From positions 15,748,001-15,812,000 of the forward strand of contig CM060733.1 in assembly GCA_030704615.1 (NCBI GenBank): DNA of 64,000 nt, in the 5' to 3' direction. Origin of the DNA: Takakia lepidozioides. Taxonomy: Eukaryota > Plantae > Bryophyta. The notes below the pieces were generated by a model that was given only the letters and a program-made list of their open reading frames with translations, was not told the DNA's origin and did no database searches. Position 1 is the stretch's first letter. Every line of letters begins with the position of its first letter. Shown here in pieces: positions 13,371 through 60,692 of the stretch. The position numbers and the translations under genes were made by a program.

Positions 13371-13598
13371 TATGCACAACGCATTACATTGCCTTCAAGA
13401 TTTTGCACGTCAGTTCCTTGCACTGTATTTGTACTGTCAAATGTACATATGTAGCCTGGTACTCTTGAGTGTCCGATCACAGACGTGGGAAGGTTGAAAG
13501 TACCTTGGTACTGCGATTTTGGGCGTGGTAGACTGCTCTTGGCCGTCAGGTTCCAGAAGAGTCCAGCTTTGATGTTGCAGACCTGGTCACAAGATTAA

Positions 13599-16992: not shown

Positions 16993-17240
16993 GACCAACA
17001 GTCAGTAGCTCAGTTGGATAGTGCAGACCCAGATGATTCTGGGGTCAAATCCAGCTACCTAGATGGGTGTGGTATGTTCTTCTCCCCCTTCCCTTGGGCG
17101 GTGTCCCATGCGAAAGCCTTCACGGCCAGGTTACTCTGAAAGAGGTTATTTTCTCCTCTAACCATAATTAAGGGCCTGATTCGTGAGCTGTCGCTCCCAG
17201 GTGTTTCCCTTTTAAAAAATTAAAAAGAAAAAAGAGAAGG
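16993..17240 (+). mobile_element. tRNA-derived SINE, near full length
   Basis: Pol III A-box TAGCTCAGTTGG (17006-17017), B-box GGGGTCAAATCC (17041-17052), a ~150-bp body shared with two other copies, and an A-rich tail. Confidence 0.85.
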
Positions 17241-21506: not shown

Positions 21507-24500
21507 TCAGTCCAATGTGGTGGAGTTTCGTCGCGGAAAGAGCTGATCAATGACATCATTGGCAAGAACATTATTTGGATCAAGGTCTGAACGCGCCTGG
21601 TTGAATGCTTCTACAGGGAAACGCTTTCGGATTCTCTCTCGCAACCATGTCATCGACTTCTCATCTTTTGGGATCTGCAACCCACAATCCAAAGAAAGTT
21701 CTCTCTTAGTCCAACCTTCTACTCCCTCTCACTCTTCTTGGGAAGCCATAGTGGAGAGAGCGAGCGAAGCAGAGAGAGAGAATGTGTGGTCACTGTTGTA
21801 CCTCAATCTTAGCCCAGTGTTCAAATGCACCATACGCATCCCACAGCTGCTGTTGTGTGGCCTTACGGTACTCAAAGAACCGATCAGTGATGGCTGCCCT
21901 TTGTTCCTCATCCGTGGTGGGCAAGTACATTATAATTCCAACCTGGGCCCACCAACAAACAACTTGCCCTGATGAAACAGAAGGTAATAAACAGTAAGAC
22001 ATTATCGTCTAAAGGGAGATAAAACTGCCTGATAATGAAGTACCCATCAAACAGCAGAGAAGGAGAGGCTATTTGATATATTGGAAAGTAAACTGAAGAC
22101 AGCACACCCCAATCCACGATTGCAAGCTCAAGCCACCCAATTGAGAAGATCCAAAACACAGAATTTGGGAGGACTTCAGAGGCAATCCGTACCGGTACTG
22201 CTGACTTGGTTCATAATGGAGGCCAGTCGAACTGGGTAAAATCGGACCCACTAGATACTGATACTGGGGCTTGCAAAATACAGAACATCCTGCTGATTAT
22301 TGTGCCAGCAACCAGAAAGACCAGCACAGCACAGCACAACCAGAAAGAGATGCATTGAAAAAGTATGGTACCCAGGAATAAATTGTATCATATGACGAGC
22401 TGGAGGCTGGGCTCAGCGGACTCCGGCTGCTGGCAGTCCACCGTTGCTCAATTGGTGCTGGTGCGGGGATGCCCTCTTTCTTTATTAATCGTAGAACTTG
22501 TTCCATGTACTTTACATCCTGTAGATCGGGTTTCCGCAGTGTGCCCGTTGGGAAGGACATTTCAGAGACCCATTGTTGGCCACCACAGTCAAAACCCAGA
22601 ATTTCATCACTCCAGCCAATTCGATAACCCTCGCTCTTTTTCCAGTACTCAGCCTCTGCTTGATTGACCTGCAGACTGAAACAGTTAGATTTGCTGCAGA
22701 GGATGTCAAACAACCCAACCGCCTACAAATCTCCTTCTCTTCCTATTGCTCTCTCTAGCCATGATTCCTCAGCGATGTTAGTGGTGCCCAGTATGCTCTC
22801 ATCCTCCATTATTTTATGTCCTGACCAGGCCCTATCCTCTATTTCCAAAAGGAAACAGCAATGTAGTGTACTGAAAACATTTTTTATTTTTATCTTTAGT
22901 GAGAGGCTAAATTCACCTTGGCCAACATATAGTTTTAACTTACAAAGAGAGATAATTCAACCATATTACAGAATTTGCAGAGATGAGGTAATGATTCTAA
23001 TCAACGTGAGGAACTCGACACAGGGAAAGGAGCTCTCACCTTAGTGACATGAGCCTTGTTTAGCGGGTCAAATGCTAGCAACTTATCACGAAGCTCCGTA
23101 AATGACAGAGATACTATCTCCTCTTCGGAGAGAACTCCCAGAGGCTCTCGGCTTCCTGCGCTGGTGCCACTCCACAAGCCAGCCTCTGCTGGTGGGCTGC
23201 CATCTCTGTGCCCTCCTTGTGTATATGCTATCTCTTCCTCAGGCCTGCCCCACAACACTAAAAATTCAATATTCCACTTCACTGTCTCTCTTTCCACCCA
23301 TCCGTGTGTCGGAGTCCTGAAATTGGTAGAGCGTATTGAGAACGCACACTATGAAAAGACCAGTACACAACTCATACCTGCAACACTAACATTGGAAGCT
23401 ATCAAACACCTTGCCCCTGCATGAGTACACCTCCATCCCCTGGGCTAATCTCTCATACTCTAGAAGATAACCAAAAATCAAGACCAACTTTAGAATTTTA
23501 ACTTCACATTGCTTTCCAGCATACATATGCAGATATCATGGTATTTAAAACTGGGGGTGTCCCCACATAGCTTTAGTTCTTCGATCATCTAATCAGGAAA
23601 GTACAACTAAACAACAACAAATGTTCTTGTGAACCTTCACCTTTGTGGGAAGTAGTCATTCAACTTACAAGTATTTAGCAGCCACTTCCCTATAAAGAGA
23701 TCGTGCTGCACTCAGCCTTTCATCCGGACTGTATTTATGAGCCATCTCCTTGAGAGTTTCCCGACCCTCTGGCAAAGGATTGCATTGAACCACCACTACT
23801 GTGTCTGTGTCAGGGATCCACATGTAACGCAAATGCTTGTTCTCCTGCAGCCATTTCCTGAAAGTTCAAGCCAACACAACTCACTCTCATGCAACAGAAC
23901 AAACAGAGAACAATCCAATCATTGAACTTTGCATAACCGAGAAAGCAAGCGTGCGAGAGAGAGAAACCAGAATTAAATTCATATTAGTAATACATCTCGG
24001 CAAAGGATCAAGCTTTTATTGAAACTTTCCAGCAGAGACCACCGCAGCCACAGAGGCAGCACAGAATTAATGATTCAACTCCTATCAAAGCCTTACTTGC
24101 ATATGGAGAACCCGCCCAAGTCCAAAGAAAACAATTATAGAAGGTGAGACAGTACTCATACTTGTGATTCTTTCGTACTTGCTTCATGTTGGTGACAAAT
24201 GTGTTCTCCAATAGCTGGTGCGCTGGGACACACTGAAGGGTGACTTCGGCAACCACTCCAAGAGCTCCAAGGCCACACCGGGCAAGGTAAAACAAGTCGC
24301 CATCAGTTTCAGCAGAGAGGTCCAATGTTCCCTTACCAGGAGTTACCAGCTTCAGGCTAACCACCTGCTCATCCACTGGGGGTAACTTTGCTCCGGTTCC
24401 ATGTGCCCCAACCTGCCAAGGAGAAAAAGACCATCTTCAGAACATATAAGTGTGCATCAAGCAAAGATTCTGCTGTCAAGCACACTGATGTTTTAGAGTC

Positions 24501-25756
24501 ATTCTTGGTCAATGACTGCTGACTCAGGCCTTGTAACCCGCCCAATTGACTTGCCAAGAAGGGGACATAACTCTCTCTTCAATGACAAATGGCTACATGC
24601 AGGACCTTCCACAATTTGTAGGAATAAAGTTGCTGGATGGAATCTTAAATTGCCATGGTCTGAGTGTTATGTTTAGCTCCCGTGCTCACAGACAGGAAAC
24701 GGGTGCCGTTGAGAAGAGGGTTATCCTTATGCTTCAGGAGTTGAGAACATCGGACCTCATTTTTCATTTCAGGGTTTAGGGTTTAACATCCCAAGTTACC
24801 GAATTTTACCTTTGAAGACGAGAAGATCTACTCGAAAAGTGGCATAAGATGCCTGGGTTAATGTGCCGATGCAAAGAAGGATACTACAAACTGATACTCA
24901 TGCTTTGCACATTATCGAAGCTCAGAGATATGACCTGTATAAAGCCGCCGATTTGTTGCTCCCGAATGGAGGCAAAATTCTGCAAAGTCAGGCCATGTGG
25001 TCTCAATGCCTCGACCACTTCTGCCACTCTAGCGCCCGCCTGCACTCTTACTTTCTTTGTCTCTTTGTCAATGCTCATAATTTTGTCCATCAATGCCAGA
25101 TTCACCATCCCGTCGTTGCATAGCCCTATACCATTCGGAGACAAACCGGATCCAACCGCCCGTATCTTCTGCTTCTTCTCATTCGCGTAGTGAACTACGG
25201 CTTCCAATTCTTCCAGAGTCTCTGGTTGTATGTAAACTCTAGTTCGAGCCTCGTGAGTCCCGCTCCAATTTGTTATTATGTGTTCATCCGGAGGCGTAAC
25301 AGGCCTGACTCTTTGTGGATACGGATAACAGTAGTAAGTTGCAAGACCAGATCCAACAAGAAGGCCAGCATACCCTAGGTAGCGGGCAAGGGGGGAAGAC
25401 GGATCGGCGGCAGGTGCGTATGCAAAGGCGGAAGAAAATGCTCTCGATGGAATTCTTGCTGCTGTGCGAAAGCTTGTTGAGGAGGAAAATCCTGAAATTC
25501 CATGCTGCTTAGAAAACAATGAGATTTGAGGCTGCGAAAGGGATGGTGACGAGGAAGCTACGGCATCTGCGTGTGCAAACCTGACCCTGCTTCTCGATAA
25601 ACAAGAAACCGACGAACCAGAGAGACAAGTCGTCAAATATGTAAGAACTCCGGTGCATGCATCTGAGCTCCTGCAGCTCAGAGACGTCGTCGATCCTCGA
25701 GAAACTGCATTGATAATGTGCAGTAGTTCCTTCCTAAATCTCTGGCGGTTTCGCAT
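21507..25756 (-). CDS. GLDH: L-galactono-1,4-lactone dehydrogenase, mitochondrial (last step of ascorbate synthesis), 7 exons, ~690 aa
   Basis: Exons 25756-24935, 24412-24162, 23857-23669, 23244-23040, 22668-22372, 21942-21802 and 21674-21507 (2073 nt, all GT-AG, phases consistent). Motifs: NWSGTHE, GSGLSPNG, LQNFASIREQQIGGFIQVGAHGTG, FDCGGQQWVSE, APIEQRW, EHWAKIE. Ser/Arg-rich transit peptide. Confidence 0.97.
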
Positions 25757-26339: not shown

Positions 26340-27260
26340 CCTCAACAGTAAACCGTGACCAAGGAAAAAAAACCCTAACATATTTTTTACATTTATGCTA
26401 ATGATCCCTTAGAGCCAATGTAAGGATCTCTTGAATTGGGAAAGTAGAAAAAGCTAAATTGTTATTTACATTCGTTCTAAGGATCCCTTAGAGCTGTTCT
26501 AAGCGGCTCTAAGGATTTCATAGAGCGGAAACAAAAAAGTCAACCATGACCAAGAAGATAAACCTTATCATATTGTTTTTACATTTATTCTAACGATCCC
26601 TTATCCTTAGAGCCAATGTAAGGATTTGTTAGATTGGGAAAATAGAACAAGCTAAATTGCTATTTACGTTCGTTCTAAGGATCCCTTAAGGATCCCTTAG
26701 AGCCGCTATAAGCCACTCACTAAGCCACTCTAAGGATTCCATACAGCAGGAATCCAGAAAAAGCTAAATTGCTATTTATATTCGCTCTAAGAATCCTTTA
26801 GAGCGCTCTAGGGATTTTTTAGAGCGGAAAAATACAAAAACTGAATTGCTATTTACATTCTAAGTATTACTTAGAGTAAGAAAACAAAAAAAGATAAATT
26901 GATATTTACATTCGCTCTAAGCATCCCTTAGAGCCACTCTAAGCCGCGGCTCTAAGGATTTTTTAGAGCGGGGAAACAGAAAAAGCTAAATTGCTATTTG
27001 TATTTGCTCTAAGGATCCTTTAGAGCCACTCTAAGGATCCTTTAGAGCCACTCTAAGGATCCTTTAGAGCCACTCTAAGGATTTATTAGAGCAGGAAAAC
27101 AAAAGAAATCTAAATGGCTATTCACATTTGATCTAAGCATTACTTAGAGCAAGAAAACAGAATAAACTATATTGCGCTCTAAAGATCCCTTAGAGCCGCT
27201 CTAAGCCGCTCTAAGAATTTTTTAGATGAAAAAAAAAAAAAACATTCACTCTAAGAGTTT
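26340..27260. repeat. Degenerate tandem array built on the hairpin CTCTAAG-GATCC-(C/T)TTAGAG
   Basis: Higher-order units of roughly 110-130 bp (aaagctaaattgctatttacattcgctctaag...). Three exact 22-mers at ~27008-27073. Confidence 0.85.
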
Positions 27261-28207: not shown

Positions 28208-30210
28208 GGTTTAGATGGGTCTGCATATACCAATATTGGAGCCGTTGTAAATGTCTGCTTCAGCCTTTCAAATGCTTGGTCAGCCTCCTCGTCCCATACA
28301 AATTTGTCCTTCCCTGTAAGTCGTGTCAATGGTGCAGCAATTTTGGAGTAGTTAATGAAGATTTTATAGAAATTTGCAAATCCCAAAAAACATTGTACAT
28401 CTCAGACCGAAGTTGGTTTAATCCACTCGATGAGGGTTTGTATTTTCTTCTGATCCATAGAGACGTTTTTGTCGGAAATAGTGTAGCCCAGAAATTCGAC
28501 CTCAGATTGATGGAAAAAACATTTTTCCAACTTGGCATATAGCCCTCTTTTTCTTAATTTATCAAGGACAAGGCGTACATGGCGGCCATGTTCTTCTTCA
28601 TTCTGTGAAAATATTAAAATGTCGTCCAAATAGATGACTACAAAGTCATCTAAAAATTCTCGAAATATGTTATTCGTCATGTGTTGAAAAATTGTTGGAA
28701 TATTTATTTGTAAGACCGAAAGGCATAACACTGTATTCAAAATGTCCATACCTTATTCGAAAAGCTGTTTTCCATTTGTCTCATTCTTTTATCCGTACAA
28801 GGTTATAAACTCCTTGGTGAAAATCTTCGCTCGTCTCAGTTGGTCGAGAAGCCCAGAAATCAGCGGCAACGGATAACGATTCTTAATTGTGACTTTGTTG
28901 AGACCGGGACAGTCCACACACATGCGTAATGATCCGTCCTTTTTTTTCACAAACAAGATAGGCGCCCCCACAGGTGATTTTGAATGTCAGATGAAGTTCT
29001 TCGACAAATTTTCATCAATATACTCACGTAATGCAGCCAACTCCGTCTGGGATAAGTTATAGATTGGGCTGAATGGTGGTTGGGCTCCTTCTTGTAACTC
29101 AATTGCACAGTCATAAGGTCGATGTTCTGGCAATATGTCTGCATTTTTCTTCTCGAAGACATCCTTGATATCTTGATATTGAGTGGGTAATGTCGAAGTA
29201 CCTTTGTCTGTTGTGGTCTTGATCGGAGTCACATAAAGTGCAAATGCCGCATCTTTTTTGGTAGCTCTCATGAAAGCTCTAGCTCCAAGGAACAGGGGTT
29301 GAATACCTTTGATATTTCTACATTTTTGTCTTGTAGAAATTTTTCGTGATCGCCAGTCGATGTCAGGATTGTGAAGTATGAACCAGGGAAGTCCAAGGAT
29401 CACAGGATTCGTTGGAGACTGGATGATGTTGAAAACAATATGTAATGCTTGATCTTCAAGCTTCACTTCAAGTGGTCGAGTTTCATGGTCAACATTTCCT
29501 TATGCTAACGGTCGTCCATTGATGACTTCAACGGGGACTGAGAGTTTCTTCTTTACGAACGTTAAATTATATTGCTTCGCAAAGTTTTTGTCAATAAAAC
29601 ATGTTGAAGCCTCTAAGTCTAAAAGTGCTTCTACAGAGATATCTCGATTTTGCACTCTGATTTTTACCAGAACTATGAAGCAAGGTGCAAGGTCTGGAGG
29701 TAGAAAGAGACATTTTTTTGGTGAGGAATTTGTGGTGTTTAGCCGCATGGTCCCTACTGTGACTGGACATCTTCGTTTTCCGACCTCCTCGTATCGAATA
29801 CTTGAGTTGCGCCCCGAGCTTTTAATCTTCTCTTGTTGGGGCAGTTTAATGCTATGTGATCTTCTTCTCCGCAATAGAGGCATAATCCATTCGAGCGTCG
29901 TCTTTGTTTTTCTTGTGGCGTCAATGGCTTGAATCGGACAGCATCAATCTGCATAGGATCACTACCGGATGTCTGATGGATTGTTGTATTTGGTGCTGTA
30001 ATAGCAGCGGCATGATGCGTCGTCGACCATCCAAATCGCTTCTCTTGATAACTTTCGAACAAACGATTATCGCATGCAATGACTTGGGTGATGAATTCGC
30101 TTAGTGTGCTCACGTTTGGCATGTCAGCAACAAATCTTTTACATCCTCCTTTAGTCCACATCAAAACTGACTAATGAGGCTCTTCTCATTCCAGTCGAGG
30201 TTGCATGCAA

Positions 30211-31611
30211 CACTACAACAGATCGCGGTAGTTATGACTGCCAAACCGTGGTACATGGTTTTCATGACTTTGACCATGACTGCACCATGTTTTTATATGA
30301 AATTGACCTCCCGCAGTCGTTCCTACGACTGTACGTCTGTATGACTATATGGCTCCGGAATGGGCGGAAGGCTGGTCAATGGCAATTGACCAGATTTAGC
30401 TCACCATTCATAGTCATTTCCACGACTACAGTGTACATGGATGAGGTTACGTAGTCATCATGAGTACTGGGGATTTTGTAATTTGGTGTGTATAATACAA
30501 TTAAAACACCATATGATCATATGAATGACTAATGGGTGTATTCAATCACGAGGTGAAAGATCTGAGGTACATCCTTGGATAAAAGACTTGACAGAAATCT
30601 TTGATAAGAGTTGGCATGGAACACCAAAAGCAGGAACTCCAGTTTCTGAAGCAGAAGATGAAGAAGGAGAAGAGGATGTGGCAGAGCCAACGGAGAGTTC
30701 AGACTCTCCAACACCATTACAGTTGAGTTACATGAGTGAAGAAGAAACCCAAGGGCAGAACTTGGAGGATGAAAACAGAGAGAAGAAATTAGAAGAGGAA
30801 GAATATGAAGAAGTAGACCCAACAGCTGAGGTTGAGACTACAACCAGGACATCCCAACCCGTTGGACCTGGATCAAGTGGAGCACTTGGATCACATGCCA
30901 ACGAAGGTGTCGGCTCAGGGGGATCAGGCGGGCTGCCTGGATCTGGCTCTGGGGGGACAGAGAGTGTGGGAAGTAGTGCAACTGAAGCTGGGAATACTGT
31001 GAATATCGTGGGGCCAGAAGCAAGGAGTGCTCAAGGGCCACCACTTAGTGGAAGATCCACCACAAAAACAACAGGTCCAGAAGGACCAGCACCAGCAAGG
31101 GTGCCAGCACCTGTCAGTGGGCAGAAGGTAGCAGGTAGTGAACTATAACTCTTATAGTAAAGAGGTTGTAGGTTCAAACTTCTCTAAGTACAATCAAATG
31201 GATAAAATGGCCCTAGGGTTAGTAGATGAGCTAGGGATAGCACGTGATACCCTAGATGGACTGCCACGTGGTTTTTTCATTATTATAAAATGCATTATGT
31301 CACGTGGCACAATGCGGTGCGACGCGGCGTTTAACATATGTTTTTATTTTTTATTTATTTTATTTTATTTTATTTTTTAAATCAATTGCGCCTCATCACG
31401 TGGCGCGGCAGCGGCGGTTGCAGTATGGTATATATGACTGCAGTGAGAGATATCACTTGGTTCATATGACTGTAATCATCCAGACCGTACCATCATGTAC
31501 TCATTGTATTGACTTGGTTTGCATGACTTATAGTCATAGAAGTCATATGTACCATTTATGACTATAGAATAGTCATAAATACAGTCATAAATACCGCGAT
31601 CTGTTGTAATG
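30211..31611. mobile_element. Non-autonomous CACTA (Pack-CACTA), 1401 bp, 3-bp TSD CAA
   Basis: 30-bp TIR CACTACAACAGATCGCGGTAGTTATGACTG / CAGTCATAAATACCGCGATCTGTTGTAATG (2 mismatches). CAA at 30208-10 and 31612-14; subterminal ATGACT/AGTCAT repeats. Removing it restores the gag frame EFRQL|ACNLDW. Confidence 0.95.
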
Positions 31612-32230: not shown

Positions 32231-32842
32231 TGTCAAGGACGAGAACATGACTGAACACAAACAAGATATCAGACTAGAGGTACAAGACTAGACAAGAAGT
32301 CAAGGTCGGCGTGGCCGAATGCATGATGGATAAACATGAATTAAGATGATCTTTATAACATTGGACAAGAGTATAAGATACTGGAATTCGACTCGAATAC
32401 TGGAATGCTGGAAACTGGGCTAGAGTATTGAAAGTTGGACTGGAGTACTGGGACTGGAAACAAGAGAAGCTTGAACTTGTGTTGGCGAAACTGAAGAGTA
32501 TCCAGTCTCGCCTCCTATATATACTGGCTACTAGGAGGTTCCCTGATAAGCTTCCACAAAAGAGGTTTCTTGATGGAGAAGTTTTCTTAAACAAAGGAGG
32601 TATCTTAATGGAGAAGTTTCTTTAAACAAAGGAGGTATCTTGATGGAGAAGTTTCATCCAAATGAAGCTTCCTAAGCAGTTTCCCAAGTTACTCTCGGTA
32701 ATTTGATAAACTCCTGGTAACTTGGTAACTAATGATAACTTATGGTAAATCATGGTAGATCACGGTAACTTTTGGTAACATTGTAACTTGGTAACTTCTG
32801 GTATTTACTCCTGGTAAGTTCCTCTGGGCTATGTCTGTGACA
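32231..32842 (-). repeat. 5' LTR (612 bp) of the minus-strand Ty3 element
   Basis: Termini TGTCA...TGACA. TATATATA at 32516-32523, internal GGTAACT repeats and a short duplication. A PBS-position motif follows at 32228-32218. Confidence 0.75.
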
Positions 32843-33244
32843 GGCTATGCTCAACAATGGTGGCAGAAACGTCTTCATGACCAAGGTCCAAACCCAGAAA
32901 GCTTGAGCTGGAGTGGGTTCAAGGAACTCATGAAAAGACAGTTTGTGCCCCTCAACGCGTCATGGCTCGCCCGAGACAAGATGAGGAATTTGAAGCAAAC
33001 GGATGACATTCGGGGATATGTTCAGGCTTTCAATGTGCTGTTGCTCGAAGTTGCGGATATGGCAGAACCAAAAATGGTCTTCAACGTTGTGGCAGGACTG
33101 GCCCTATGGGCCAGCCGGAAGTTGGAGGAGAAGCCACCTAAGACTTTGAATGAGGCAGTTGAAAGGGCTGAATGTTTCTCGGATGTCCCTAGGGGCGAAA
33201 GACAAGGCCGTACGGAGCTGAACCACAAGAACACCCAACAATGA
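32843..33244 (+). pseudogene. Fragment of a second Ty3/gypsy gag (retrotrans_gag) cut by the LTR
   Basis: AQQWW...LSWSGFKELMKRQF...LKQTDDIRGYVQAF...GL...PKTLNEAVERAE. It starts exactly at the LTR boundary. Confidence 0.8.
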
Positions 33245-33246
33245 GT

Positions 33247-36200
33247 AGGAAGACACTGAAGGAGTTTTTGACGAACCTCCTTCTCTAGATGCAAAACAAG
33301 CCATCATACTTGAGAAAAAAGAAAACCTGAATGTCATCTTTAGGTCCCTTCTGATTGAGGTTGGTATACTCGAGATCCCACTGTGTCGCATGATCTCAAT
33401 GCAAGTGGTAAGGCCTGCCCTTGCCAATGACATTCTTAAACTAAGAGCTGATTTCTACTCAGGATATCACCTTGGGGCCTCAGTATTTTATGTATCTCTT
33501 GAGGGGATTGAGGGATCCATTGTTGATGTCACCCCCGATATCACATCCACATGGGATATCCATTGGAAGGAGGTGAACAAAGAATTTGAAGACTATCTTG
33601 AGTCAAAGCCTACATTGCACCATTTGAGGGGCAAGATGTTCCATGTCTGGGACGGCAATCACAGACTTCAAGCATGGTTGTCTTACATCAAAGAAGTTCA
33701 TAAAGCAAACAAATTAAGGCATGTGCGTGTAACAAGCTGGGTTTTGAATGCTGAGATCAACAATCGTGGATCACTTAGGTCCATCATGGATGGAGTCAAT
33801 GTGTAATTATTTTTTTCCATCGTCATCAATTACATTTCTCTATTTGACTTCATTTGGAAAGTGTGGTCATGCGTTGCTTGTGTATCAATGTGTAAGGCGA
33901 CCGAGAGAGCTTATGTCACATCCAAGTTTGTTCACCTGGTGTGTAAGGTGAATATAATTGGTCTTACCCAAGTCACAGAGTGGGAGAATGTCTTAAAGAG
34001 CAATATGAGGAATGTTTGAAGAAGGTGGAAAGACTTGGTACAATCTCACCGTCCATGCGATGACGGAAATTCTATACAAGGTCAGTTTTATACACTGCTA
34101 CATCATTTCTGTACTTCTATACTTTGATAAATTCAAGGTTGCAAGATTGTTGATGGATGGTTGTTTGTTTCTATAGCATGAAATTGTGGAGGCACAACGC
34201 ATGGCAGGGGAAGCATATAGATTGCAAGATGGGCCAAAGTCTCAGGAAGGATTGGAAGATGTCATGAAACAGGGTGGACTTAAGGCAAGGGAACACCACA
34301 AGAGTCAACTGGTGAAGCTACTACCTGTGGCCGATCCCACCTTGGGGGAAGGATTCCTCAAGGAATTGAAGTTGCACTGGTCACGTGCTAAGGCAGGGTC
34401 CGAGGAGATGACTCAGGAGAAGATGGTAATCATATCCACGGCAAGGGTGGATCTAGAAAAGAAGGTGGAATGGCTGCATATTTGGAATGGAGATCAAGCA
34501 TTGAGAGACCAAAAATTCTACCCACCGAGGCCCATCAGTGGGCCAACACTGGATCCCTGGCTCAATAGAAGAATATTTTGGTGGCAGGTGCAAATTTGCA
34601 TTGCTCTTGCTCTTTCGAAAAGGTCCTTATGTGCAAGATACCTGTTCTTTGCAAGTTTTTTCCACTTCGCAACAAAATGACATCATACATTGTTTGTTTC
34701 ATACACAGCTTCGAAATGTGGCTTTGGCACAATTTGCTTTGTATACCACCCAGTCTGGACAATTCCATATTGCTTTGGAGGAAGGTGAGGGTGAGAGTTT
34801 GGGAGACTATATTGACACGTGAAAAATGGCTCATTTCAATGAGTTGTTCCATAGAGAGTTCTATTTGCCAAAAGGACCATTTCGAGGCAATGACTGGGAA
34901 CAGCAAGTTGGGGGAGAAAAAGTTGTCAAACGGATTCACTTCAGGTATTGTCATATATATCCATCAATTCTGTTTTACTGAACTGTGCAAACAATTCAAA
35001 GGTTTTTGTGGTTGTGGAATTACAATTTGTTGCAATTTGTGTTTGTTCTCTTGTTGTTCAGGTACATGAGATTTGTTCTTGGACCTGATGATCGGCTCAA
35101 AGCGGAGCCAAAATTTCTTATGGCTTGGAAATTTGGTGCACCTCCAGCCACAATGTACACCCCATAAATTGAGAATGATTGGGGTAGAGAGCATCGCGAG
35201 GGAGGGGGGTGGTACTTGGATATGCCAAAAGGGAGTGTTCCATATGCAGAATCGGCTCTTTCACAAGGATTGTGTTGCTAGGCAACAGCTAAGTGATACT
35301 AGAGTGGCCACTACTGAGGTTCCACTCAAAGAACTGGAATAAGCTGAGCAGATAGCGTCCTAGGCTGCTAATGTTGTGGCTGAGGCAATCCCTGCAGCAG
35401 TTGGTGTGCCAAAGCGGAAAGCTCGTAAGAGAAAAGAGGTGGAAGTTGTTGGTGTGGTTGGTCCACTGTCTTTAGTGCCTGCACCTGATAGCTCCACTCA
35501 GGCTTCGGGACAGCTGATCATTTCCCCTCAGCCACCAGCTAGTCTAGGTGTTAAGTCGGGAGAGCGTCCTTTCAAGGCAGTGTCATTTCCATCTCGCAAC
35601 CTGGGCCCCTATTGCATGAAGATTTTTCCAACACATTTTATTGACATGGTCATGGCCTCCTCCATTGAGCAACATCCTACCCTTGTGGAGCTTCTTGGGT
35701 TTTTCAAAAATGTGAGATCTCATTTTTTGTTCATGATGATGTGGTTTGCTTTCTTCTCTTTGTGTCTTGTTGTATTCAGATGCGTTTTAAATTTTGCTCT
35801 CATGTGTTCTTTTGCAGCTTCTAGGACCTTGGCTGAGTGTCATTGACGGGCAGCGGGCACCTTTCTCTGTGGATATGATCATCGTCGACTGTCCTACTGG
35901 AATGCCCGTTGAGGGTTGCTTAATTGGATGGGGTGTCACCTTGGAATGCTTTTGACAAGCGTTATTGGGAGTTTGCTTTTTCCATTGCAAATGACTTGTT
36001 GGATGACAACGGTTGTTTAGTGTTCTTGCAGGGCACTGATGATACTTCCGCTATGGAGCTGCATTCTTTTTCAAAAGGCAACAAAGTGTCTGTCTTGTCA
36101 AGGAAGTTCACATGTATTAACACCATCCCTCTCCATACAAGCACTGGAAAGGTATTGATCTTAATCAACCACCTTGCTTGCTTCTATTCTTTGTACTGAG

Positions 36201-37247
36201 AATGTTCTCTATCTTCTACTTGTGAACTTTTCAAAATCTTGGAATGTGCGTTAATACTCTTTGGTGTGAATACATGTGTGGCAGACCATCTTCTTCCATG
36301 CACATGTCTTGACTAAGCAAGGTGGATGTTTTAAATTTCACGAGTCTGGCAAACTGGTGGATCCCCTTGTGGATCCTGTTCAGTTGGATGCACTCTTCAA
36401 CCACATTCCGGATGGTTGTTTGCCTATGCAATCTGCTGGACAGGCTTGGAGGGGTGCACGGGATCATAGTCCTGCATTTATGCAGGTGCTGTTGGAGACA
36501 TGTTCGCCTCCAGGTTCACGGATTCTGGATCTGACAGTTGGGACAGGTAAATTCAGTTTTTGCACACTGTCTTTGGATGCATGTCAATAAATTTGCAGTG
36601 TTGTAAATGGTTTGGGTATGTTGTGGTGCACGTTCAACTTTCATTGCTGCAAGTGCGTCGAGTCATCATGTCTTTGGTCTTGAAGGGGACAAAGCGCTGT
36701 ATGCAGCACGTTTGTCTGCACTTCAAGAACATGTTCCCAATGTTGTTTCGTCAGCACTTGTTACTCCTACCATTCAGCATCCTCTCACTTTGTTGGAGCC
36801 CCCTGCTCCAAAGCAAGCACGCAAACTTGCACTTAACCTCAACTATATTTTGTAGTGAATGTACGTCTCTTCTTCTTTGGCTTTATTATCATGCTAGTTA
36901 AACTTTGAATTGAGTCCACTACATGTTCTTGTTTTGTGTGCATTATTTAGTTGTTTTTTTCTTCTCTTGTGTGCAGTCATGGACTCATGCGGTCTATCTT
37001 CGACGATCTGCCTGCTAGTCCATCTTCATCTTTCTCTCTCCCAAAGTATGCAGAGGACTTAGCTATGCATTCTAATGAGCTAGAGAATGCAAATGTAGGT
37101 TTTCGTGGTTTTGGGTTCCGTGGGTCTCAAGCTAGTGCTTCTAATCGCGGGGAGATGTTCCGTCGGGCAGAGGTTTTCATGGACATAGATGCTTATGTGT
37201 CTACTGGAGATATTGAGGATGACGTCTCTACCGAGGATGATTCTTAG
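33247..37247 (+). pseudogene. Multi-exon ParB/Srx-like plus beta-class N6A/N4C DNA methyltransferase-like gene, 5'-truncated and disrupted
   Basis: WDGNHRLQAW at 33648-33677. Motif IV-like SVDMIIVDCPTG at 35866-35901, then ..AFSIANDLLDDNGCLVFL. Motif X/I region SPAFMQVLLETCSPPGSRILDLTVGTG|STFIAA..HHVFGLEGD at ~36468-36690. About 9 exons with GT-AG introns, several in-frame stops and frameshifts. Confidence 0.75.
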
Positions 37248-38116
37248 AAAAACAATGTAGTTGGTTTTTTCTTATGCATTGAGCTGCAAGTACTTTCTTT
37301 GAAATGAAGAGAATATGAAGTTATTCATTCTCCTCCTTCAGAATCCAAGTTTTGGGGATTCATTTTTTGTGCATCATTCTGTGTAACAAATGGTTACAAT
37401 TAGACTTAAAAAATATTACATGCACATAAAACATGAAGTTGGAGGCATGCAAACCAAAATAGGAAATAACTTCACAAGGTGTGTAATTCGGAGTACTTGA
37501 CTAGAATCATGTGGAGGTGCACGGTTGTACTTGGAAAAATAAAATAAAATCCGTGGGAATAGGGTGTTCTTCAATTGTAAGGCAACACGGTTATAGGTCT
37601 ACTAGTATTCAATATGTTATCCGCGGTACTAGGGGGGGGTCATCCGTGAGCCTATGCTCACCAATGCAAGCTCACCGCTCTAGGCTCACGGAATAGCATC
37701 CATGCTATGCGCAGCCAAGACCAGATGTGTCGTTCTATGGGCTTGGAGTGTTACTACCTCATTCAATCGGAGTTCGTTCAGATATAGGAGTTGGCTGCGC
37801 CTCCGATAAATGTCTTCCTGCATTGTGAAACATCTGAAGCACGACACTTCAAGTAACTGTACATTTGAACAGACCTACTTACACCTACAGCTTTCAACAG
37901 AAGTACATTGTTTTTCAGCTTGACAACACATTTTTTGAATGTCGAGTCATTTCTCAATTGTCTTGTTTCTGATGGGTAGATAGGTGTCATCCACATACCA
38001 TCTGACCTAGAGTAGTACTGCCAGAAGGCTACGCAGTACTCTGCTCTATCAAAGCCCACTTGATCAAGTCATGCCTTTAAACCTACACCATTCAGGGACA
38101 TCAGGTTTGAACTTAC

Positions 38117-38487
38117 CAAGTCAATTGTGGATATCGACTTGTTCCGCTTCAAGGCATCAACTACTCTCTCAACGCCCTGGAAAAATGAAATCAGACCAAT
38201 CTCTAACGTCTTTACTTTGTGGAGTACACTACAGAGTGAAAGCACATAATTTCTATTTCAATAATGAATAAAAGGAAGAAATCAAGATTGTGGTTAAAAT
38301 GTGATACTGTCAGTCCCAAGTATTCTGAAGGTTTTGGAAAGGATTGGAGGTTGAACCTGGTCATGAACATCATTCATGTACAGATTCAGCCATTGCAAGC
38401 TTTTGCTCTTTTTAATGTATTGTGTCACATGGAATGCTCCCTTAGGCCTTATATTGTTGTTCCCAAGGTCCAGACTTGTTATCTTTC
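38117..38487 (-). pseudogene. Two orphan exons of a host RNI-like leucine-rich-repeat gene (resembles Arabidopsis At1g10510/EMB2004, from memory)
   Basis: Exon 38487-38357 KITSLDLGNNNIRPKGAFHVTQYIKKSKSLQWLNLYMNDVHDQ and exon 38176-38117 GVERVVDALKRNKSISTIDL. Both have AG/GT borders and join in phase. Confidence 0.75.
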
Positions 38488-38754
38488 CTACAATGGAGGA
38501 GCCGGTTAGTCAATGAAATCCTCCTTCCTCACTAACTTTTGAAGGAAACGCACATCCTGACAAAGTTCCTTCATTAGCTCATCATAAAATCACCTTTAGG
38601 TGCACCCATCTCTATAGAGGGCTGCATGAACCATGATTGTTGTGTGAACTCTCATTGGCCACTTGTAGGGGACGGGTAGATGCAGACTACACTGGTTCTG
38701 TTTGGACTGCAATTTGCAGTTTTCGACTGACTGCTTATCATATTATTCTTCACC

Positions 38755-39099
38755 CTATACAAATGTGCTCCTTTCTGGTCGGGCATAGTTCCTGACATAC
38801 CCCTTCAAGGTTTTCATGTACCTTTCAATGGGGTACATCCAGCGGGTACAAACCGGGCCACAAAGCGCCAATTCATCCACAAGGTGGAGTATAAGGTGGG
38901 ACATAACATCAAAGAAAGAGGGGGGGAATTCTTTCTCAACCAAACAAAGGGTAAGAACCACATCATCCTTCAAGGCCCCCGAACTTTCGGGATCCACGGT
39001 CTTCATGCATAAATGATGAAAAACCCTTGAAATCCTCATGATGGCTTGCCTTGCACCTTTACCCAACAATCCCCGGATGCAAAGGGGAAGAACATTCAT
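38755..39099 (-). mobile_element. CACTA (En/Spm) transposase fragment (DUF4218 region)
   Basis: EKEFPPSFFDVMSHLILHL...GPVCTRWMYPIERYMKTLKGYVRNYARPE is the canonical En/Spm transposase segment. Confidence 0.92.
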
Positions 39100-39765
39100 A
39101 GCAAATGGACTTAGAATGGGTTAGCCACTTACCATATGTACATGTGGGTATATTTATTTTGGAATTTGGATGAAATCTTATGAAGCTATGGACATTTGTA
39201 CGGAATTCCAATGGACTGTCACAGTCCATCTAATGTCCCAAATGCCATCTGAAAAACCTATTTGTGCAAAACCAATTCATATATGGACTTTACAACTAGA
39301 TACACAATGTTTGAATAGACACAAATATAAATTTGTGAACAATTCCATCCATCCACCAAGACACTATGGACTTTTTTGTACCCAAAAAACCCCCAAAATG
39401 ACGATTTGTCCATAGCATTTTGAAAAACTCATATTTGGGTGGAGATCTTTGCTAAGAATATATATATTGTTATTGTCTCTAGGAGCTTATTTTTATATGG
39501 ACAAATTTCATAAACTACAAGATAATAATAAATAGCTATTATTTCTAAATAAGGAAAAATTATTTAAAAACAATTATAATAAAAATAAATATCTCAAATA
39601 TTTGGGATGAGACCATTTACTAAATATGATTAGTATACCATTACCTATGAAGATAAAAATATATTTGAACAAATATCCTTAAATAAAAATTTAATTGATT
39701 TTTTCTCATGGACTTTCAGTGGAGGGCACATCTGCCGCTTGTGAGCCAGTGTAGTCAGCACTTAC

Positions 39766-40192: not shown

Positions 40193-43079
40193 TATTCTGT
40201 TGACAAAGCATTAAAAAAGAGGTCAGGTCTAGGTAACATGTTCTTGATTTGCATAAATTTCACTTCTCATTCATGTGGATAGTGCATGGCTGCCCAATTT
40301 TGGACCGATGGTTCTATCTCTGTTCCAGATCTATGACGTTGTCAGTGTGTGAGTATTAGCAAAAAGATATTGATGGCATAATACAACTGTTGGGGGCAGC
40401 ATTGATAGGCTGCATTGCTGCAATGCTCTTAGGAACACACTGCAATAATTTTCCTACAATAGCACCACTCACAGTCACAACTATGTCGTAGCAGTCTTGC
40501 ACAACCAACAATAATCTAGTTTTGGTGCTGACTGAGAGTTCATTTCGGGGTTGACTGAAAACACTTTGTAAGGTTCTGGAACTACAAATGTAGCCTGCGT
40601 GGTTACAAATACTAGATACATGTGACTATGGGTGATCTGCCCAACCTTATGGAGGTACAGATGAGGGAGGATGCACATAGTTCCCAGTTTACTCACCTCA
40701 CATTTTCCTCTGGTTGACATCATCAACGGGCATTATGTAAGTGGATTGTAGTTGTAAGGGTCTGATGAGGAAGAAGCCTGTGCTATGGCACCTGAGGCAA
40801 GGAGCTGTTCGTATGAGATAGCATTCAAGTCCAATGGTATTGATTTTTGCCGTCGGCTCTCTTCTTCTCTTGCTTTAGCTTCTTCTGCTGCTACCTGTGT
40901 TTTCTCCTCCTGCATGCCATTGCCACTCCATTCAGGTCTCCTTATCAGCCCTTCAATCATGAAGAACGCTAGGCAACATACATTGCACTAAAGACTGCAC
41001 ATGTCAAGTTTATATAACCAAAATGGCATTTACAGGATTGAAACTTGAGAATTTTTTTACAGGGCAGCCCTTGAACTCAGTAAGTGCTTGAACCCAAGAT
41101 GTCATACTTTCTACCATCAAACAAGGTTTGTAAACATCACCCACCTTCATGAAATCATATACATGGTACTAAGACAGTTTGTATTGTAGCAGATACTCTT
41201 CAGCAATGAAGGTGTTCAATGTGGCAAGAAAGCTACCAAGCACTACAAGAACAAGACTGTGACTGAGAGTGATTGCAACATTGAATATAGGGGCCAGTCC
41301 CTGAGTGACTGATTTGAGCTGGATCCAAAAATAGTCTAGTGGAGATTAGCCCTTCGGGGGTAGTGACACCATAAGTTACACCCGCTTCTGGCATGAGCCT
41401 TCCTTGGGGAGGGAATCTACAATTGATCAAATGGACTGAGCCATGATTAAGACTTCCCTTACTCACTAGCCTATTTTTTGAACTATCCTCATATTAGTTT
41501 AAGTGGCCTTAAATTTATTTGTTCAGAACTTGAAAGTTTTACTGTGCCTAGGAGCTCCAAAAGGTTTGGGATCTCTGGCAGAACATGTATGTCAACAATA
41601 TAATTCAATCCCCAAGTAGTGCTGCTCACACTCAACTGCTCTATGGCAAAGAGAAAGAAAGAAGGAAGGACATATAGTTTTAAACTTTTGCGGGAGGGCT
41701 AGCATCTCCTTTGGATCTCTACAAAGAAAACTTGTCAATTTCAGATAAAGACGCCAACTTGTTGCACAGCTTACAACTGCTTGAAGTGATCCTATATTAG
41801 AAAGTAAAAGGCAGTCACACATGAAAACAGGTCATTAAGCATTATCTAACCAAAGCAATGTCAGGGCTCTCATAAATATCTGTTTAATGCAGAATCTATA
41901 CCATTGCCACCGTAGCCAATATAGCACACAGTCCTGCTATGGATGTTTCTTTGACATATATCCTACGTTCATTACAAGCTGCTCAGAATCGCAACATAAT
42001 TACCTTTTGGTCCTATTGACTTGGGATATCTATCCCTTTGTGTTCCGGTCAAACTGGGCGCCGGGTGAATGGCTTCAAGGTTACATCATGAATTCATACC
42101 CTCCAACCTTTCATACCCAAGTTAATTGAGATTGCAGATTCCCCCTGCAAGAAGTTTTTCGCTGGCACCATGAGATAGATCACAACATAAATTCTTCACT
42201 GATGCGAGTACTGTGATCTCACTATAAATCTGATTCTCACACCCAACAAAATCATCATTACTTGTGAGAACAAATCTAGCCGAAACCCATACACAATTCA
42301 ATCTTGGTGTTTCTAACAGCGTCTTCCAGCCAATGCTCCTGCAATCTTGTTGTAAATGAGGTTACAGCTTTCCTGAAGACTTGAAACATACCTACAGTAT
42401 CCAATCCACTATTCCTGCAGATGTCTGTGATGGACAGAGAACATAAACAATGACAAACACAGCCCATATGCCAATCCTACCCACTTGTTAGGTGAATTAT
42501 GGAGCTCGCCTTGTTACATGAATTACATAACTTTGCCAAGAGAGAGTTTCTTTTCTTAGTAGCTTTATGGCCAGGAAATCTGATCTTCACAACAAGACAG
42601 TAATACGTGGGTCGACTTGCCAATTGTTAGCGCATATCCTCTTTTCCCTCATCGTCTCCATCTCCCCTCTCTCGGACACTTGTAATAACTATCTCCACTC
42701 GCACTCGATTTCCCCAATATGCACCCTCCTATCACAACTGCAACAATTACCACCCCAACCGCATAACTACCACCCCCCCCCCCCCCCCCCCCCCCCCCCA
42801 CTACTTGTCTGAGATCCACTCCTCTCTCAACATATTAAACTCCACAATTGGAGCAGTCCATAAAATTCTAGGGGATCACCTTGCAACAGTCACCCCAGCC
42901 TCCCAAGATCTCCTCCTCACCTCCAAAAAATTCCCATTTCTCTCCAAAAACATCCTCTCTGCCACACTCAAGGCAGTCACTCCGATACCTAGGTACGAAC
43001 CCCCACAACGGCACTACCCAGGACACCCCCACCCGCCGCCACCACCACCAATACCCCCCCTACCCCCGTCCTGCACCCC

Positions 43080-44270
43080 AACACTCTCATAATAACTTCC
43101 TGGAATGTTGGATCCTTAGCGACCAGCATACAGAGCCTCCTCCATCTCTTCACATAATCTTCACAGCCACACATTTTTCTCCTACAAGAAACCAAGTTAC
43201 ACACTACCCACACCAGTAGCTCCTACATAAATAAATTATTACCAAACTACTACATCCTATACGGCAACCCCTTGACAGCCCAACAATGCACCGTATGAAG
43301 ATCCGCACCCTACAAACCTACCCGGGGTGGTCTTGCACTAGGTATTCTTCCTATGCACCACTCCCCCAGCACCACCACCAAACTCACCATACCTCTCCCT
43401 CTCTGATCTCACCTTCAAATCATACAACTACACCCCCCATGCTTATGCCCGATCCTCCTCATACATCTGTATATGCCTTCCTAGACGGACGACCTTTCCC
43501 TTATACCAGACATACTACACACTATAACCAATACAATCACCCATACGGACTATCAGCAATGTTCACCATGTCATCCTAGCAGGAGACTTCAACAGAGATA
43601 TCGCTATGACCGGGCACTCATCCAATGGCGCTCACGTATCCCCATCCTCAACTGTAAATGGGCCAGATTCACCCAAAACCTACAACTCAAATATATCCCA
43701 GATGTCCACCATTATTCTAGGCAGGGCGGCCTCAACTATTCATCCCTAAGTCTACTAGACAGCTTCTACCTCAAAACAAACAACACAATTCCATCCTACC
43801 TCCTTGGTCACGTGCATATCCAGCACTACCCTGTATCCATCTCCCTCCCACCGTCCCTCGTCCCTTTCCGACCCCTTCCGGATATACTCACCCCGCCCCC
43901 ACAGCCGCGGATCCTCTCACCTATACCACAATGCAATATCACAGCCTTCCAAAAACACTTCCAACCTGCCTCCTCTAACTTCATACACAAAATATCCCCA
44001 ATATTGTTAGACACCAACCTTCCCCCCACCGAAGCCTAGGCCATAACTGAAAACCTACTTACAGCCACTATACAAGAAATGACAAAAAAACGTTTTGGCA
44101 ACATGCTCCTCTCCCCTGACCTCCCACAAACTACTCGATCCACATAAAATGGAGGCTATCTCAACCGCACCCAAAAACGCGAATGGATTCTACACCTCAA
44201 TATCTATCACTCCATTAGACGCGCCCTCTCTATCACTCCTACTGGCCCAATCCCAAGACCCTGCAGTTTG
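43080..44270 (+). mobile_element. Degenerate LINE ORF2 5' fragment (APE endonuclease)
   Basis: Frameshifted motifs in the correct order: SWNV (~43098), FLLQETK (~43180), VILAGDFN (~43570-43593), QHYPV (SDHxP-like, ~43821). C/A-rich strand. Confidence 0.7.
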
Positions 44271-48472: not shown

Positions 48473-49468
48473 TGTTAGAGGGCTGCTTGGGACTTAGACG
48501 CTTTTACGGGATCTGTGGGGTACCCTTAATTTTTACACAGACTGAGACCAACAGGAGCCTTAGGGGTGACAGCAACAGGCTTTAGGGGGGAAGATACACA
48601 GCCCGACACAGTCCATCACCCGACACAGTCACCACAGCCGTCACAGCTTTGCACAGCCAACACAGTCTGTCACAGTCCGACACAGCCGTCACAGCTTCGC
48701 ACAGCCAACACAGTCCGTCACAGCCAGTCACAGCCCGACACAGCCGCCACAGCTTCGCACAGCCCTACACAGCCCGACACAGCCAGTCACAGCCCGCCAT
48801 AGCCTGATACAGCCAGTCACAGCTCGGCACAGCTGGGGAACAGTTACCATTGGCAGGGAACGACTGTGGGGGAACGACATCTGAAAAAGGAACGTGTACT
48901 ACAGGGATAACGGTTAGTTAGGAAAGCGGTTAGAACAGCTTGTAAGTAGATAAAGCGAAGAGCGGGGACGTCTCGGGGATCACTTCTTGGGGGGGACTTC
49001 TGGCATCACGGCTTGGAAATAGAGGGGAGAGCACATCTCTGAGTGGAAAGATGAAGAGCATGGAGTAGGAGAAGTGACGATCTGTTGTTACTTGATGAAT
49101 GCAAGCTGTAGAATTGTAATGTAGAGTAGATAAGAGACACCATGACTTCAGCCTGATACTTGATAGATATTAATCTGATACATACTTCATACTCACACTG
49201 TGTAGAGAGACCTGAGTGAAGCTGTGGAATGAATGGATGGAACTTGATAGATTTATGAAGCAAACTGATACTTAATTGCAGATAGTAAGGTAACTCACTA
49301 ACATGAATGCGGGAATGAGTACAAATAGGAAACACCCCCATGATACACTAGTTGTAGGTCATGACTAATTGTTCTGAGCGGGCTGAGTGCTTAGAGATTT
49401 TCAACTCTTCTATCTTGGAGTTCCCACCTCGGATAGCGAAGGGATGGGTGAGTAAAAGCCGCGCGACA
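48473..49468 (+). repeat. 5' LTR (996 bp)
   Basis: TGTTAGAGGG...GCGCGACA, colinear with 60693-61717. CACAGC tandem array at ~48596-48832. Confidence 0.96.
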
Positions 49469-52400: not shown

Positions 52401-52557
52401 GACCAAAGGAGAGATTACCATTGGACAGCTATTGGCTGTGGCACCTTATTGTAGACACAGGCTGTATCAAGCAATCAATCGAATTGCCCAGGAGACAGGA
52501 AACACAGACCTGAACAGCAAGGTGACCAGTTATAATGTGAAGCCGGAAGGGCGTTAA
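49361..52557 (+). pseudogene. gag with a long N-terminal extension and three CCHC knuckles (broken by stops and a frameshift)
   Basis: ORFs 49361-50056 and 50249-51643 share a frame. The capsid core starts at MALQP (~50909; FLCSL..KASEWY, LKQKKHETVEEY, WFVSG). Knuckles CAKC..H, CTICKMDNHSTENC, CYYCNQPGHRKAAC. Confidence 0.85.
49471..49490 (+). promoter_or_regulatory. Primer-binding site, probably tRNA-Arg
   Basis: TGGCGACCATACTAGGGAGT lies 2 nt after the LTR and resembles the complement of a plant tRNA-Arg 3' end (recalled, not aligned). Confidence 0.6.
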
Positions 52558-52563
52558 ACAGTC

Positions 52564-55500: not shown

Positions 55501-56075
55501 CCCACAGGGTAATGGGCAGGGCAGAGGCTACCAACAAAATACTATGTACTATCTTGGCTAAGATAGTCAATGGAAACAGAACGGATTGCAATACAAAGCT
55601 GCTGACAGCTTTGTGGTCATACAGGACTTCATATAAAGTCAACCACTAAGTATACACCATTCTAATTAGTTTTATGGTAAGGAAGCTTTACTTCCAGTGG
55701 AATTCCTGTTACCTACCATGAGAACGGAATGGGGAAAGAGAATGGAATTGCAAGATTCAATTAAGGTCAGGAAACATGAATTATACCATGTGGAAGAAGT
55801 ACGTGCTGATGCAGCTGATAACATGACCAGAATTCAGATGAAGAAAAGGAACAGTTTGATGAAGGCAAGTTAAAGACTTTTAAGACGGGAGATTTGGTTC
55901 TCTGGTTCAGAAGGGGAAGATTAAAGCTTCTAAGCTTAAATCACCATGGAAAGGACCTTATGTCATAGAAGATGTATGATAACAACACCGCCATGTTACA
56001 AAACATTAACAAAGAGATGCTGGAAGAGTCAATGCAATAAGTTGAAGGGTACAGTGGTATCCATGACAAACCATT
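52564..56075 (+). pseudogene. pol (protease, RT, RNase H, integrase), heavily frameshifted
   Basis: VLIDGGSGVNIM; WLSPIVIVLKKNGKLKVC; MPFGLCNAPATFQR; VFLDD; VSCDAS; DHQAL; integrase GGHF..CQSCDECQ, LDFVGP, NGQ.EATNK. Confidence 0.92.
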
Positions 56076-60653: not shown

Positions 60654-60674
60654 ACCGTGGGGACACGGCTTTTT

Positions 60675-60692
60675 GAGAGGGGGAGGGGTAAA
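60675..60692 (+). promoter_or_regulatory. Polypurine tract
   Basis: GAGAGGGGGAGGGGTAAA immediately before the 3' LTR TG. Confidence 0.9.

Follow-up and report, generated by a model that had tools for sequence, protein, structure and literature searches.

The 64,000-nucleotide (nt) stretch of the Takakia lepidozioides genome analysed here (assembly GCA_030704615.1, contig CM060733.1, positions 15,748,001 to 15,812,000 of the forward strand; the whole stretch is referred to as the window, and coordinates are counted from its first letter) carries, on its plus strand between 33249 and 37247, the remains of a gene from a family whose members join a ParB/sulfiredoxin (Srx)-like domain and an amino-methyltransferase-like domain in a single protein. 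Translation of the window and reading of its splice sites define a GT-AG chain of nine exons, distributed as follows.

33249..33802, plus strand: exon 1; predicted ParB/Srx-fold domain with the DGNHR motif; without a start codon or an upstream exon; donor GT at 33803-04
33897..34080, plus strand: exon 2; 77% amino acid (aa) identity to locus L001; two frame shifts
34177..34588, plus strand: exon 3; middle region, fold unassigned; 67% aa identity to L001
34709..34944, plus strand: exon 4; in-frame TGA at 34820-34822
35062..35711, plus strand: exon 5; K/R-rich linker; in-frame TAA at 35165-35167; further stop/frame break at 35279-35363
35818..36151, plus strand: exon 6; first half of the methyltransferase-like domain; motif IV equivalent DCPTG at 35887-35901; +1 shift
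36285..36546, plus strand: exon 7; motif X, followed by the beginning of motif I (... SPAF ... ILDLTVGTG)
36632..36851, plus strand: exon 8; rest of motif I and motif II (STFIAAS ... FGLEGD); no AG acceptor before the exon
36977..37247, plus strand: exon 9; acidic C-terminal tail; stop at 37245-37247

GT donors were located at the exon ends at 33803, 34081, 34945, 35712, 36152, 36547 and 36852, and AG acceptors at 33895, 34175, 34707, 35060, 35816, 36283 and 36975. A sequence-only reading of this DNA had proposed such a chain and quoted four peptide strings from it, all of which are present in the plus-strand translations and each where it had been placed. The blocks corresponding to the window exons recur in unrelated contigs (L001/L002 and L015-L018) in identical order and frames, with aa identities of 55-77%, whereas the stretches between the blocks are unconserved in those same contigs. 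The exon-intron structure is therefore considered real, rather than the outcome of a chance chain, and the conservation of the chain in relatives bears out the proposal that the gene contains introns. The structure is not fixed within the family, since in L083 the counterparts of window exons 7 and 8 constitute one continuous reading frame (13453-14217) devoid of the intron, indicating intron gain or loss among family members.

Break sites in the window copy were called by exon-wise comparison with its relatives (L001, L018). The TGA in exon 4 occupies a position at which L001 encodes W, and the TAA in exon 5 one at which L001 encodes E, with the additional stop and frame break of exon 5 falling between 35279 and 35363. 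In exon 2, the frame shifts at around 33996 and again at around 34030-34036, within a region where L001 keeps one frame, and in exon 6 a +1 shift at around 35920-35926 interrupts a stretch (DCPVG ... PPWN) that L018 reads in one frame. The window chain hence contains at least four frame breaks and two in-frame stops, and no AG acceptor is found in the window copy before exon 8 (around 36632). Homology to all relatives has a sharp 5' limit at 33241-33249, where an unrelated retrotransposon gag fragment has just ended.

32831..33244, plus strand: gag fragment (PF03732, E 6e-14), belonging to the flank and not to the gene; it shows where the 5' truncation lies

Two N-terminal exons that are present in L085, together with the entire upstream region, are missing from the window copy, and they are regarded as lost because homology starts only at this boundary, next to the gag fragment. 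Judged from its sequence, the window copy is a 5'-truncated pseudogene and not an expressible chain, and the locus is orphaned, its 5' end, its partner gene (described below) and its immediate upstream region being gone. Hence, the chain originally proposed stands as regards its peptide strings, its mostly GT/AG exon ends and its conserved blocks, and it fails as an open chain given the stops, the frame breaks and the absent acceptor. Decay is not exclusive to this copy. The L001-L004 copies are likewise decayed, and the L001-L004/L009 lineage has a small private inversion, within a decayed copy, of the initial 240 bases of exon 5 (L001 11747-11980) with respect to the window and L015-L018.

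The gene model of the Adiantum nelumboides protein P0114 also places gag immediately upstream of the ParB-like domain, with both in one orientation, as seen at window 32831-33803. The possibility that gag forms part of the gene was considered and rejected, as the two gag pieces (window and P0114) are not alike and other copies have no upstream gag; the adjacency of gag and ParB in P0114 and in the window is read as coincidence.

The nature of the N-terminal half was assessed by structure prediction. An AlphaFold2 model of window exon 1, based on a 78-sequence alignment, attained a predicted local distance difference test score (pLDDT) of 92.9, and its comparison with PDB representatives yielded 17 chains with Z≥2, of which the best 11 all present the ParB/Srx fold. 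The best match was KorB (Z 6.4; root-mean-square deviation 2.4, 81 residues aligned), with PadC (Z 5.5), plant and human sulfiredoxin (4.9 and 4.0), Pnob8 ParB-N (4.8) and SerK (4.7) as further matches, and with Atu1540, SbnI, Spo0J, SspE and BrxU as the remaining ParB/Srx-fold proteins among these 11. The window also presents FHVWDGNHRLQAW, a phosphate-binding motif of the Gly-x-x-Arg type (DGxHR/GxxR), and residues G89, N90 and H91 of this DGNHR motif are each at least 90% conserved across the 78 homologues; the motif is altered in some decayed copies, reading DGNRM in L001 and DGNHH in L083. Other approaches did not recover the relationship. No single window exon had a Pfam match at E≤1, and neither did the full-length fern proteins; the exon 1 family profile produced no ParB match against PDB sequences, returning only a spurious ribosomal protein; ParB_N was seen only as a weak language-model neighbour; and Foldseek on the exon 1 model returned only hits with E>1, making the all-against-representatives structural search necessary. 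The middle region yielded no identifiable helix-turn-helix domain. Despite the modest Z values, the model-based assignment of exon 1 to the ParB/Srx fold is taken as sound, because the list of best matches is exclusive to this fold and DGNHR is nearly invariant in the family, and the ParB/Srx call made from the sequence alone is thus upheld.

Intact family proteins from ferns span approximately 700-1000 aa, and the family architecture consists of the N-terminal ParB/Srx-fold domain, a middle region of approximately 400 aa with no assigned fold, and a C-terminal beta-class amino-methyltransferase-like domain. As had been anticipated, both halves reside in one protein in Adiantum (P0106, P0170 and P0171, from A. 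nelumboides and A. capillus-veneris), and the exon chain with both halves is colinear in L001, L018, L020, L083 and L085. The methyltransferase fold was modelled on a natural fern homologue (P0170:560-854), and not on the window exons, of which exons 6-8 align colinearly to this fern region. The AlphaFold2 model had a mean pLDDT of 67.7, rising to 85-93 in core blocks, and a predicted template modelling score of 0.73. A Foldseek search with this model placed beta-class or type III Mod amino-methyltransferases at all ranks from 1 to 42 (best E 4.5e-8), and VIA-align Z scores reached 19.3 for M.MboIIA, 18.2 for M1.HpyAVI, 17.7 for M.BceJIV, 17.1 for CcrM, 16.1 for the rotifer N4CMT (8s9n) and 14.8 for M.PvuII, with RsrI and type III Mod also in the 14.6-19.3 range. 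The MT-A70 family was found at Z 8-13 (ranks 12-20), and all other folds scored below 7. A profile search of the PDB with the fern C-terminal region plus single window and L020 exons identified the beta-class N6-adenine (N6A) enzyme M1.HpyAVI as best hit (E 0.029), together with M.RsrI, and in the profile alignment to M1.HpyAVI motif IV, the 'NPNGC' strand, motif X and motif I follow one another colinearly. The PF01555 model is matched by the last methyltransferase exon of L085 (L085:1522-1935; 27.8 bits versus a gathering threshold of 26.7, E 3e-6) and, below threshold, by L083 (19.1 bits), and has no match in window exons or fern proteins. Motif I and the acidic residue of motif II are kept in the window (ILDLTVGTG ... 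FGLEGD), in L083 (DLTASTGAS ... GVERD) and in ferns (ELGAGTG ... VIDND). As a model-based prediction, the assignment of the C-terminal half to the beta-class (permuted) amino-methyltransferase fold, with motif order IV, X, I, therefore holds, in agreement with the layout first proposed.

The same cannot be said of the catalytic motif. In enzymes carrying (D/S)PP(Y/F/H/W), the fourth residue of motif IV stacks on the target base. The equivalent tetrapeptide reads DCPT in the window, DCPV in L018, DIPE in L020, DMLE in L083, DHPH in L084, NQPS in L085, and DLPT, DFPI or DVPF in fern proteins, so that among the copies compared it never matches the (D/S)PP(Y/F/H/W) pattern and its fourth position is unconstrained. 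Canonical catalysis is doubtful because the catalytic loop reads D-x-P-x and varies freely between copies. The motif IV proposed for the window reads DCPTG, and the label of DNA-modification module given to the gene is unproven, given that motif IV both deviates from that of the active class and varies between copies. METTL14, in which the motif is disrupted, is an inactive partner (PMC4738411), and by that analogy a module that binds S-adenosylmethionine (SAM) and is catalytically altered or inactive appears more likely than a canonical N4-cytosine (N4C)/N6A methyltransferase.

To delineate the family, exon 1 was searched with phmmer against 1.8 billion cluster representatives, yielding 395 matching representatives, and metagenome contigs were scanned, yielding 241 stretches in which a relative is encoded. 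Of these, 80 loci were retained, mostly from moss-associated and peatland samples, and most copies contain stops. The median pairwise ratio of nonsynonymous to synonymous substitution rates (dN/dS) for exon 1 was 0.10 (33 pairs among 24 stop-free copies), and comparison of the window exons with those of L001 and L018 gave, in both halves, omega values of 0.07-0.27 with saturated dS. The combination of low dN/dS and saturated dS indicates that the family lineages separated long ago under constraint and decayed later. A tblastn search of a fern protein against 50,697 phage records gave no match, and pattern scans of prokaryotic genomes and viral contigs recovered no relative. The prokaryotic derivation advanced by the sequence-only reading is hence plausible from the fold, but these searches brought up no close relative among phages, prokaryotes or viruses.

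The flanks of the relatives suggest a DNA transposon as the probable carrier. Comparison of upstream flanks, and then of L083 and L085, two long contigs whose copies are better preserved, revealed a transposase-like partner gene located upstream on the opposite strand, in head-to-head arrangement, in eight lineages (L005, L023, L063, L074/75, L080, L083, L084 and L085), including one (L005) from the group closest to the window copy. The partner gene also occurs in very many copies: it forms 62 clusters, one of them from the liverwort Riccia sorocarpa. It presents a Cys/His-rich N-terminal piece, and the consensus of its last exon has N-x-x-E-T-V-H-N-K-W close to its beginning and terminates in C-x-C ... 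C-K-H. A SWIM zinc finger (PF04434, CxCxnCxH) was detected in 6 of 26 partner homologues (best E 2e-4), and was the only feature to emerge from otherwise uninformative Pfam and protein atlas queries on the identity of the partner. From the SWIM finger, the Cys/His-rich N-terminal piece and the gene layout, we infer that the partner is probably Mutator-like. The proposed link of the gene family to DNA transposons is thus supported by its multi-copy nature and by a partner gene in eight lineages, and its specific link to CACTA elements is not, the gene having no CACTA inverted repeats around it: the only such pair in the window bounds a separate 1.4-kb element at 30211-31611.

Palindrome arrays constitute a second recurrent feature. 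Immediately upstream of the gene, L001 has an array (9117-9715) of a palindrome of approximately 40 nt, and L005 has a related one, also upstream (7464-8308). The sole array candidate in the window is located approximately 6 kb upstream of the gene, beyond nested retroelement pieces.

26475..27195, no strand: palindrome array, 11-12 copies of the 19-nt near-palindrome CTCTAAGGATCCYTTAGAG with a GGATCC core, within 84-nt repeats
28402-28746, minus strand: Ty3/gypsy reverse transcriptase (PF00078), with neighbouring minus-strand open reading frames that include a zinc-knuckle motif; it lies upstream of the gag fragment

The palindrome CTCTAAGGATCCYTTAGAG occurs nowhere else in the window and has no match in 85 fetched loci, and the L001-type palindrome has no match in the window. 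The array at 26475-27195 could be the array of the gene's own element, displaced by nested insertions; nothing ties it to the gene. The Ty3/gypsy fragment is interrupted by the 1.4-kb CACTA-type element with its own inverted repeats (30211-31611), which contains at 30542-31131 a copy, at 95% identity, of a 590-bp piece (50311-50900) from the gag region of the long terminal repeat retrotransposon described below. A candidate synteny between window 29.3-31.9 kb and L001 4.2-5.1 kb was rejected, the weak matches being Ty3/gypsy sequence.

We therefore consider it very probable that this region holds a defunct copy, shortened at the 5' end, of an accessory gene that DNA transposons carry in seed-free land plants. 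In intact copies, the encoded protein would recognise the palindrome array of its own element, as ParB does with parS, and its ParB-like half would thereby bring the SAM-binding, methyltransferase-like module to element DNA. There the module might mark the DNA; because its catalytic loop is unconstrained, however, an action that involves no methyl transfer seems likelier. In the window copy such a mechanism would be inoperable, on account of the stops, the frame shifts, the lost splice site and the disappearance of the 5' end, the partner and the upstream region.

Several observations weigh against this interpretation. The window lacks the partner-type transposase, and the gene is not surrounded there by terminal inverted repeats, so the transposon context of the window copy is derived from its relatives only. 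The pieces of the partner gene show no match to PF10551, the DDE domain of Mutator-like elements, at E≤0.1-1. The evidence for the methyltransferase fold originates in a fern homologue rather than in the window's own broken sequence, and no window exon reaches any Pfam threshold. Palindrome binding is proposed by analogy. Lastly, the TNP2 transposase gene of L018 and the TNP2-type fragment near the window gene (see below) indicate that the carrier may differ between copies.

A more ambitious version of the transposon accessory gene interpretation holds that intact members are working element-encoded modifiers, guided to their own palindromes and depositing N4-methylcytosine or N6-methyladenine or using SAM otherwise, through which the transposon would control its own chromatin state. 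We regard this as rather unlikely. If true, the family would be an equivalent, borne by eukaryotic transposons, of the ParB-methyltransferase modules of phages, maybe exchanged between Mutator-like and EnSpm carriers.

Less probable still, and in our estimation quite improbable, is the original view of the gene as cargo of a CACTA/EnSpm element within the block, its product being a functional N4C/N6A DNA methyltransferase by which the element is marked or protected. This view draws on the presence of CACTA transposase sequence close to the gene.

38758..39120, minus strand: CACTA/EnSpm TNP2-type transposase fragment (DUF4218, the TNP2 C-terminal domain; E 3e-27, 120 aa), 1.5 kb downstream of the gene

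It also draws on L018, the closest well-covered relative of the window copy, in which a TNP2 gene (PF02992, E 1e-51) stands directly upstream of the gene on the same strand. The DUF4218 part of this TNP2 gene is 57% identical at the aa level to the window fragment, a divergence similar to that of the accessory gene itself, and the SAM-binding motifs of the latter are kept. The two layouts disagree, however, being tandem in L018 and tail to tail in the window, where only a 120-aa fragment of the transposase exists and no CACTA inverted repeat flanks the gene. Furthermore, the L018 copy is itself cut at the 5' end, which suggests nesting, and eight lineages, including L005 of the window's closest group, present the SWIM-type partner instead. 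The requirement for an active enzyme is at odds with a motif IV that conforms to (D/S)PP(Y/F/H/W) in none of the copies compared and, for this locus, with the broken state of the window copy. Because the layouts disagree, the L018 copy is truncated and no CACTA repeats bound the window gene, the recurrence of TNP2 is read as nesting in CACTA-rich DNA, and some lineages may ride in EnSpm elements.

The least credible alternative, to which we give hardly any weight, is that of an ordinary host gene family, domesticated after an old horizontal acquisition, with a decayed paralogue at the window locus and a proximity to transposons reflecting repeat-rich surroundings: the strong purifying selection that acts on both halves while synonymous distances are saturated, intron positions conserved between distant copies and fern annotations that list the proteins as ordinary hypothetical proteins would fit it, but it is opposed by the hundreds of diverged copies in the same samples, most of them with stops, by the constant head-to-head partner with its SWIM ending, itself multi-copy, by the palindrome arrays beside the gene in L001 and L005, and by published algal transposons of the same design (PMC12477816).

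The remainder of the window presents a variety of other features. A full-length long terminal repeat (LTR) retrotransposon of approximately 13 kb occupies 48473-61615, with LTRs of approximately 900 bp (48473-49366 and 60693-61615) that are 89-100% identical, and its coding sequence includes a zinc knuckle and a protease in addition to gag (PF03732/Ty3 capsid). At 11547-17152, two inverted repeats of 126 nt (94% complementary) lie 5.35 kb apart, and this segment may be a non-autonomous DNA transposon. On the minus strand, host-gene-like exons at 22297-25756 carry FAD_binding_4 (E 4e-23) and ALO (D-arabinono-1,4-lactone oxidase) domains, and look like a gulonolactone/arabinonolactone oxidase-type gene. 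Also on the minus strand, between the end of the accessory gene and the CACTA transposase fragment, 37781-38509 contains stop-free stretches resembling leucine-rich-repeat (RNI-type) fragments. The region 42000-44000 shows an extreme GC skew (-0.46) and proline-rich reading frames, with a run of 27 C at 42773-42799, and 62545-64000 is a dense satellite-like array of 72/144-nt units that are mutually inverted repeats (GGCGCCATTTTTCC...).

The family to which the window copy belongs is abundant and old, with saturated synonymous sites and an exon 1 dN/dS of about 0.1. It occurs in ferns and moss-associated samples, with a partner homologue in a liverwort. Should intact proteins of the family bind the palindromes of their own element, and modify it or shield it, they would represent a new way for plant transposons to handle host silencing. 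The window locus adds one dead copy to this picture, and its value lies in being a data point and in correcting both the carrier assignment and the methyltransferase activity that had been assumed.

To date, reports of transposon accessory proteins combining ParB-like and DNA methyltransferase domains concern brown, red and green algae, and are predictions. The closest parallel is Sola1-1_Ec32 of Ectocarpus, which encodes a 1104-aa accessory protein with ParB-like and N4C/N6A-type DNA methyltransferase domains on the strand opposite to that of the transposase (Dinatale et al. 2025, PMC12477816). The two systems share the union of both domains in one large protein, a gene with introns that resides on a DNA transposon (for the present family, a probable one) and is opposite in strand to the transposase or transposase-like gene, and a proposed role in binding and modifying the element's own DNA. 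They differ in that the family described here is hosted by land plants, has a partner with a SWIM ending (probably Mutator-like) rather than a Sola1 transposase, and presents a degenerate and variable catalytic loop; the likeness to the algal proteins is drawn from their description. The Plavaka elements of the red alga Bostrychia moritziana (PAG2/PAG3) likewise encode an accessory protein with a ParB-like N-terminal domain and feature tandem inverted-repeat arrays beside the gene, and self-binding of the element has been proposed for them (Petroll et al. 2025, 10.1101/2025.02.11.637652). In that case, however, the ParB-like domain is fused to a 2-oxoglutarate-dependent oxygenase, the N6-adenine methylase is encoded by a separate gene, PAG2, in fusion with SET, and the carrier is Plavaka.

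Among prokaryotic systems, the bacterial PF01555 enzymes (M.MboIIA, M1.HpyAVI, CcrM, M.RsrI and M.PvuII) share with the family the fold predicted for it, the permuted motif order and recognisable motifs X, I and II, whereas identity amounts to 10-16% and the family has D-x-P-x in place of (D/S)PP(Y/F/H), a 400-aa middle region and introns. Phage ParB-methyltransferase fusions resemble it in their N-terminal ParB/Srx-type domain. The bdelloid N4CMT shares the beta-class fold (8s9n, Z 16.1), but both N4CMT and the Marchantia DN4MT1 (10.1101/2021.02.12.428880) are host genes with demonstrated N4-methylcytosine activity, and N4CMT carries a chromodomain instead of ParB, with no specific sequence relationship to the present family seen. 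A 2016 survey of eukaryotic adenine methyltransferases described ParB-linked clades in chlorophytes, chytrids and haptophytes, and no land-plant clade of this kind (PMC4738411). The overall design is therefore known. What, as far as a limited literature search shows, had not been described is the family in land plants, together with its SWIM-type partner and the degeneracy of its catalytic loop.

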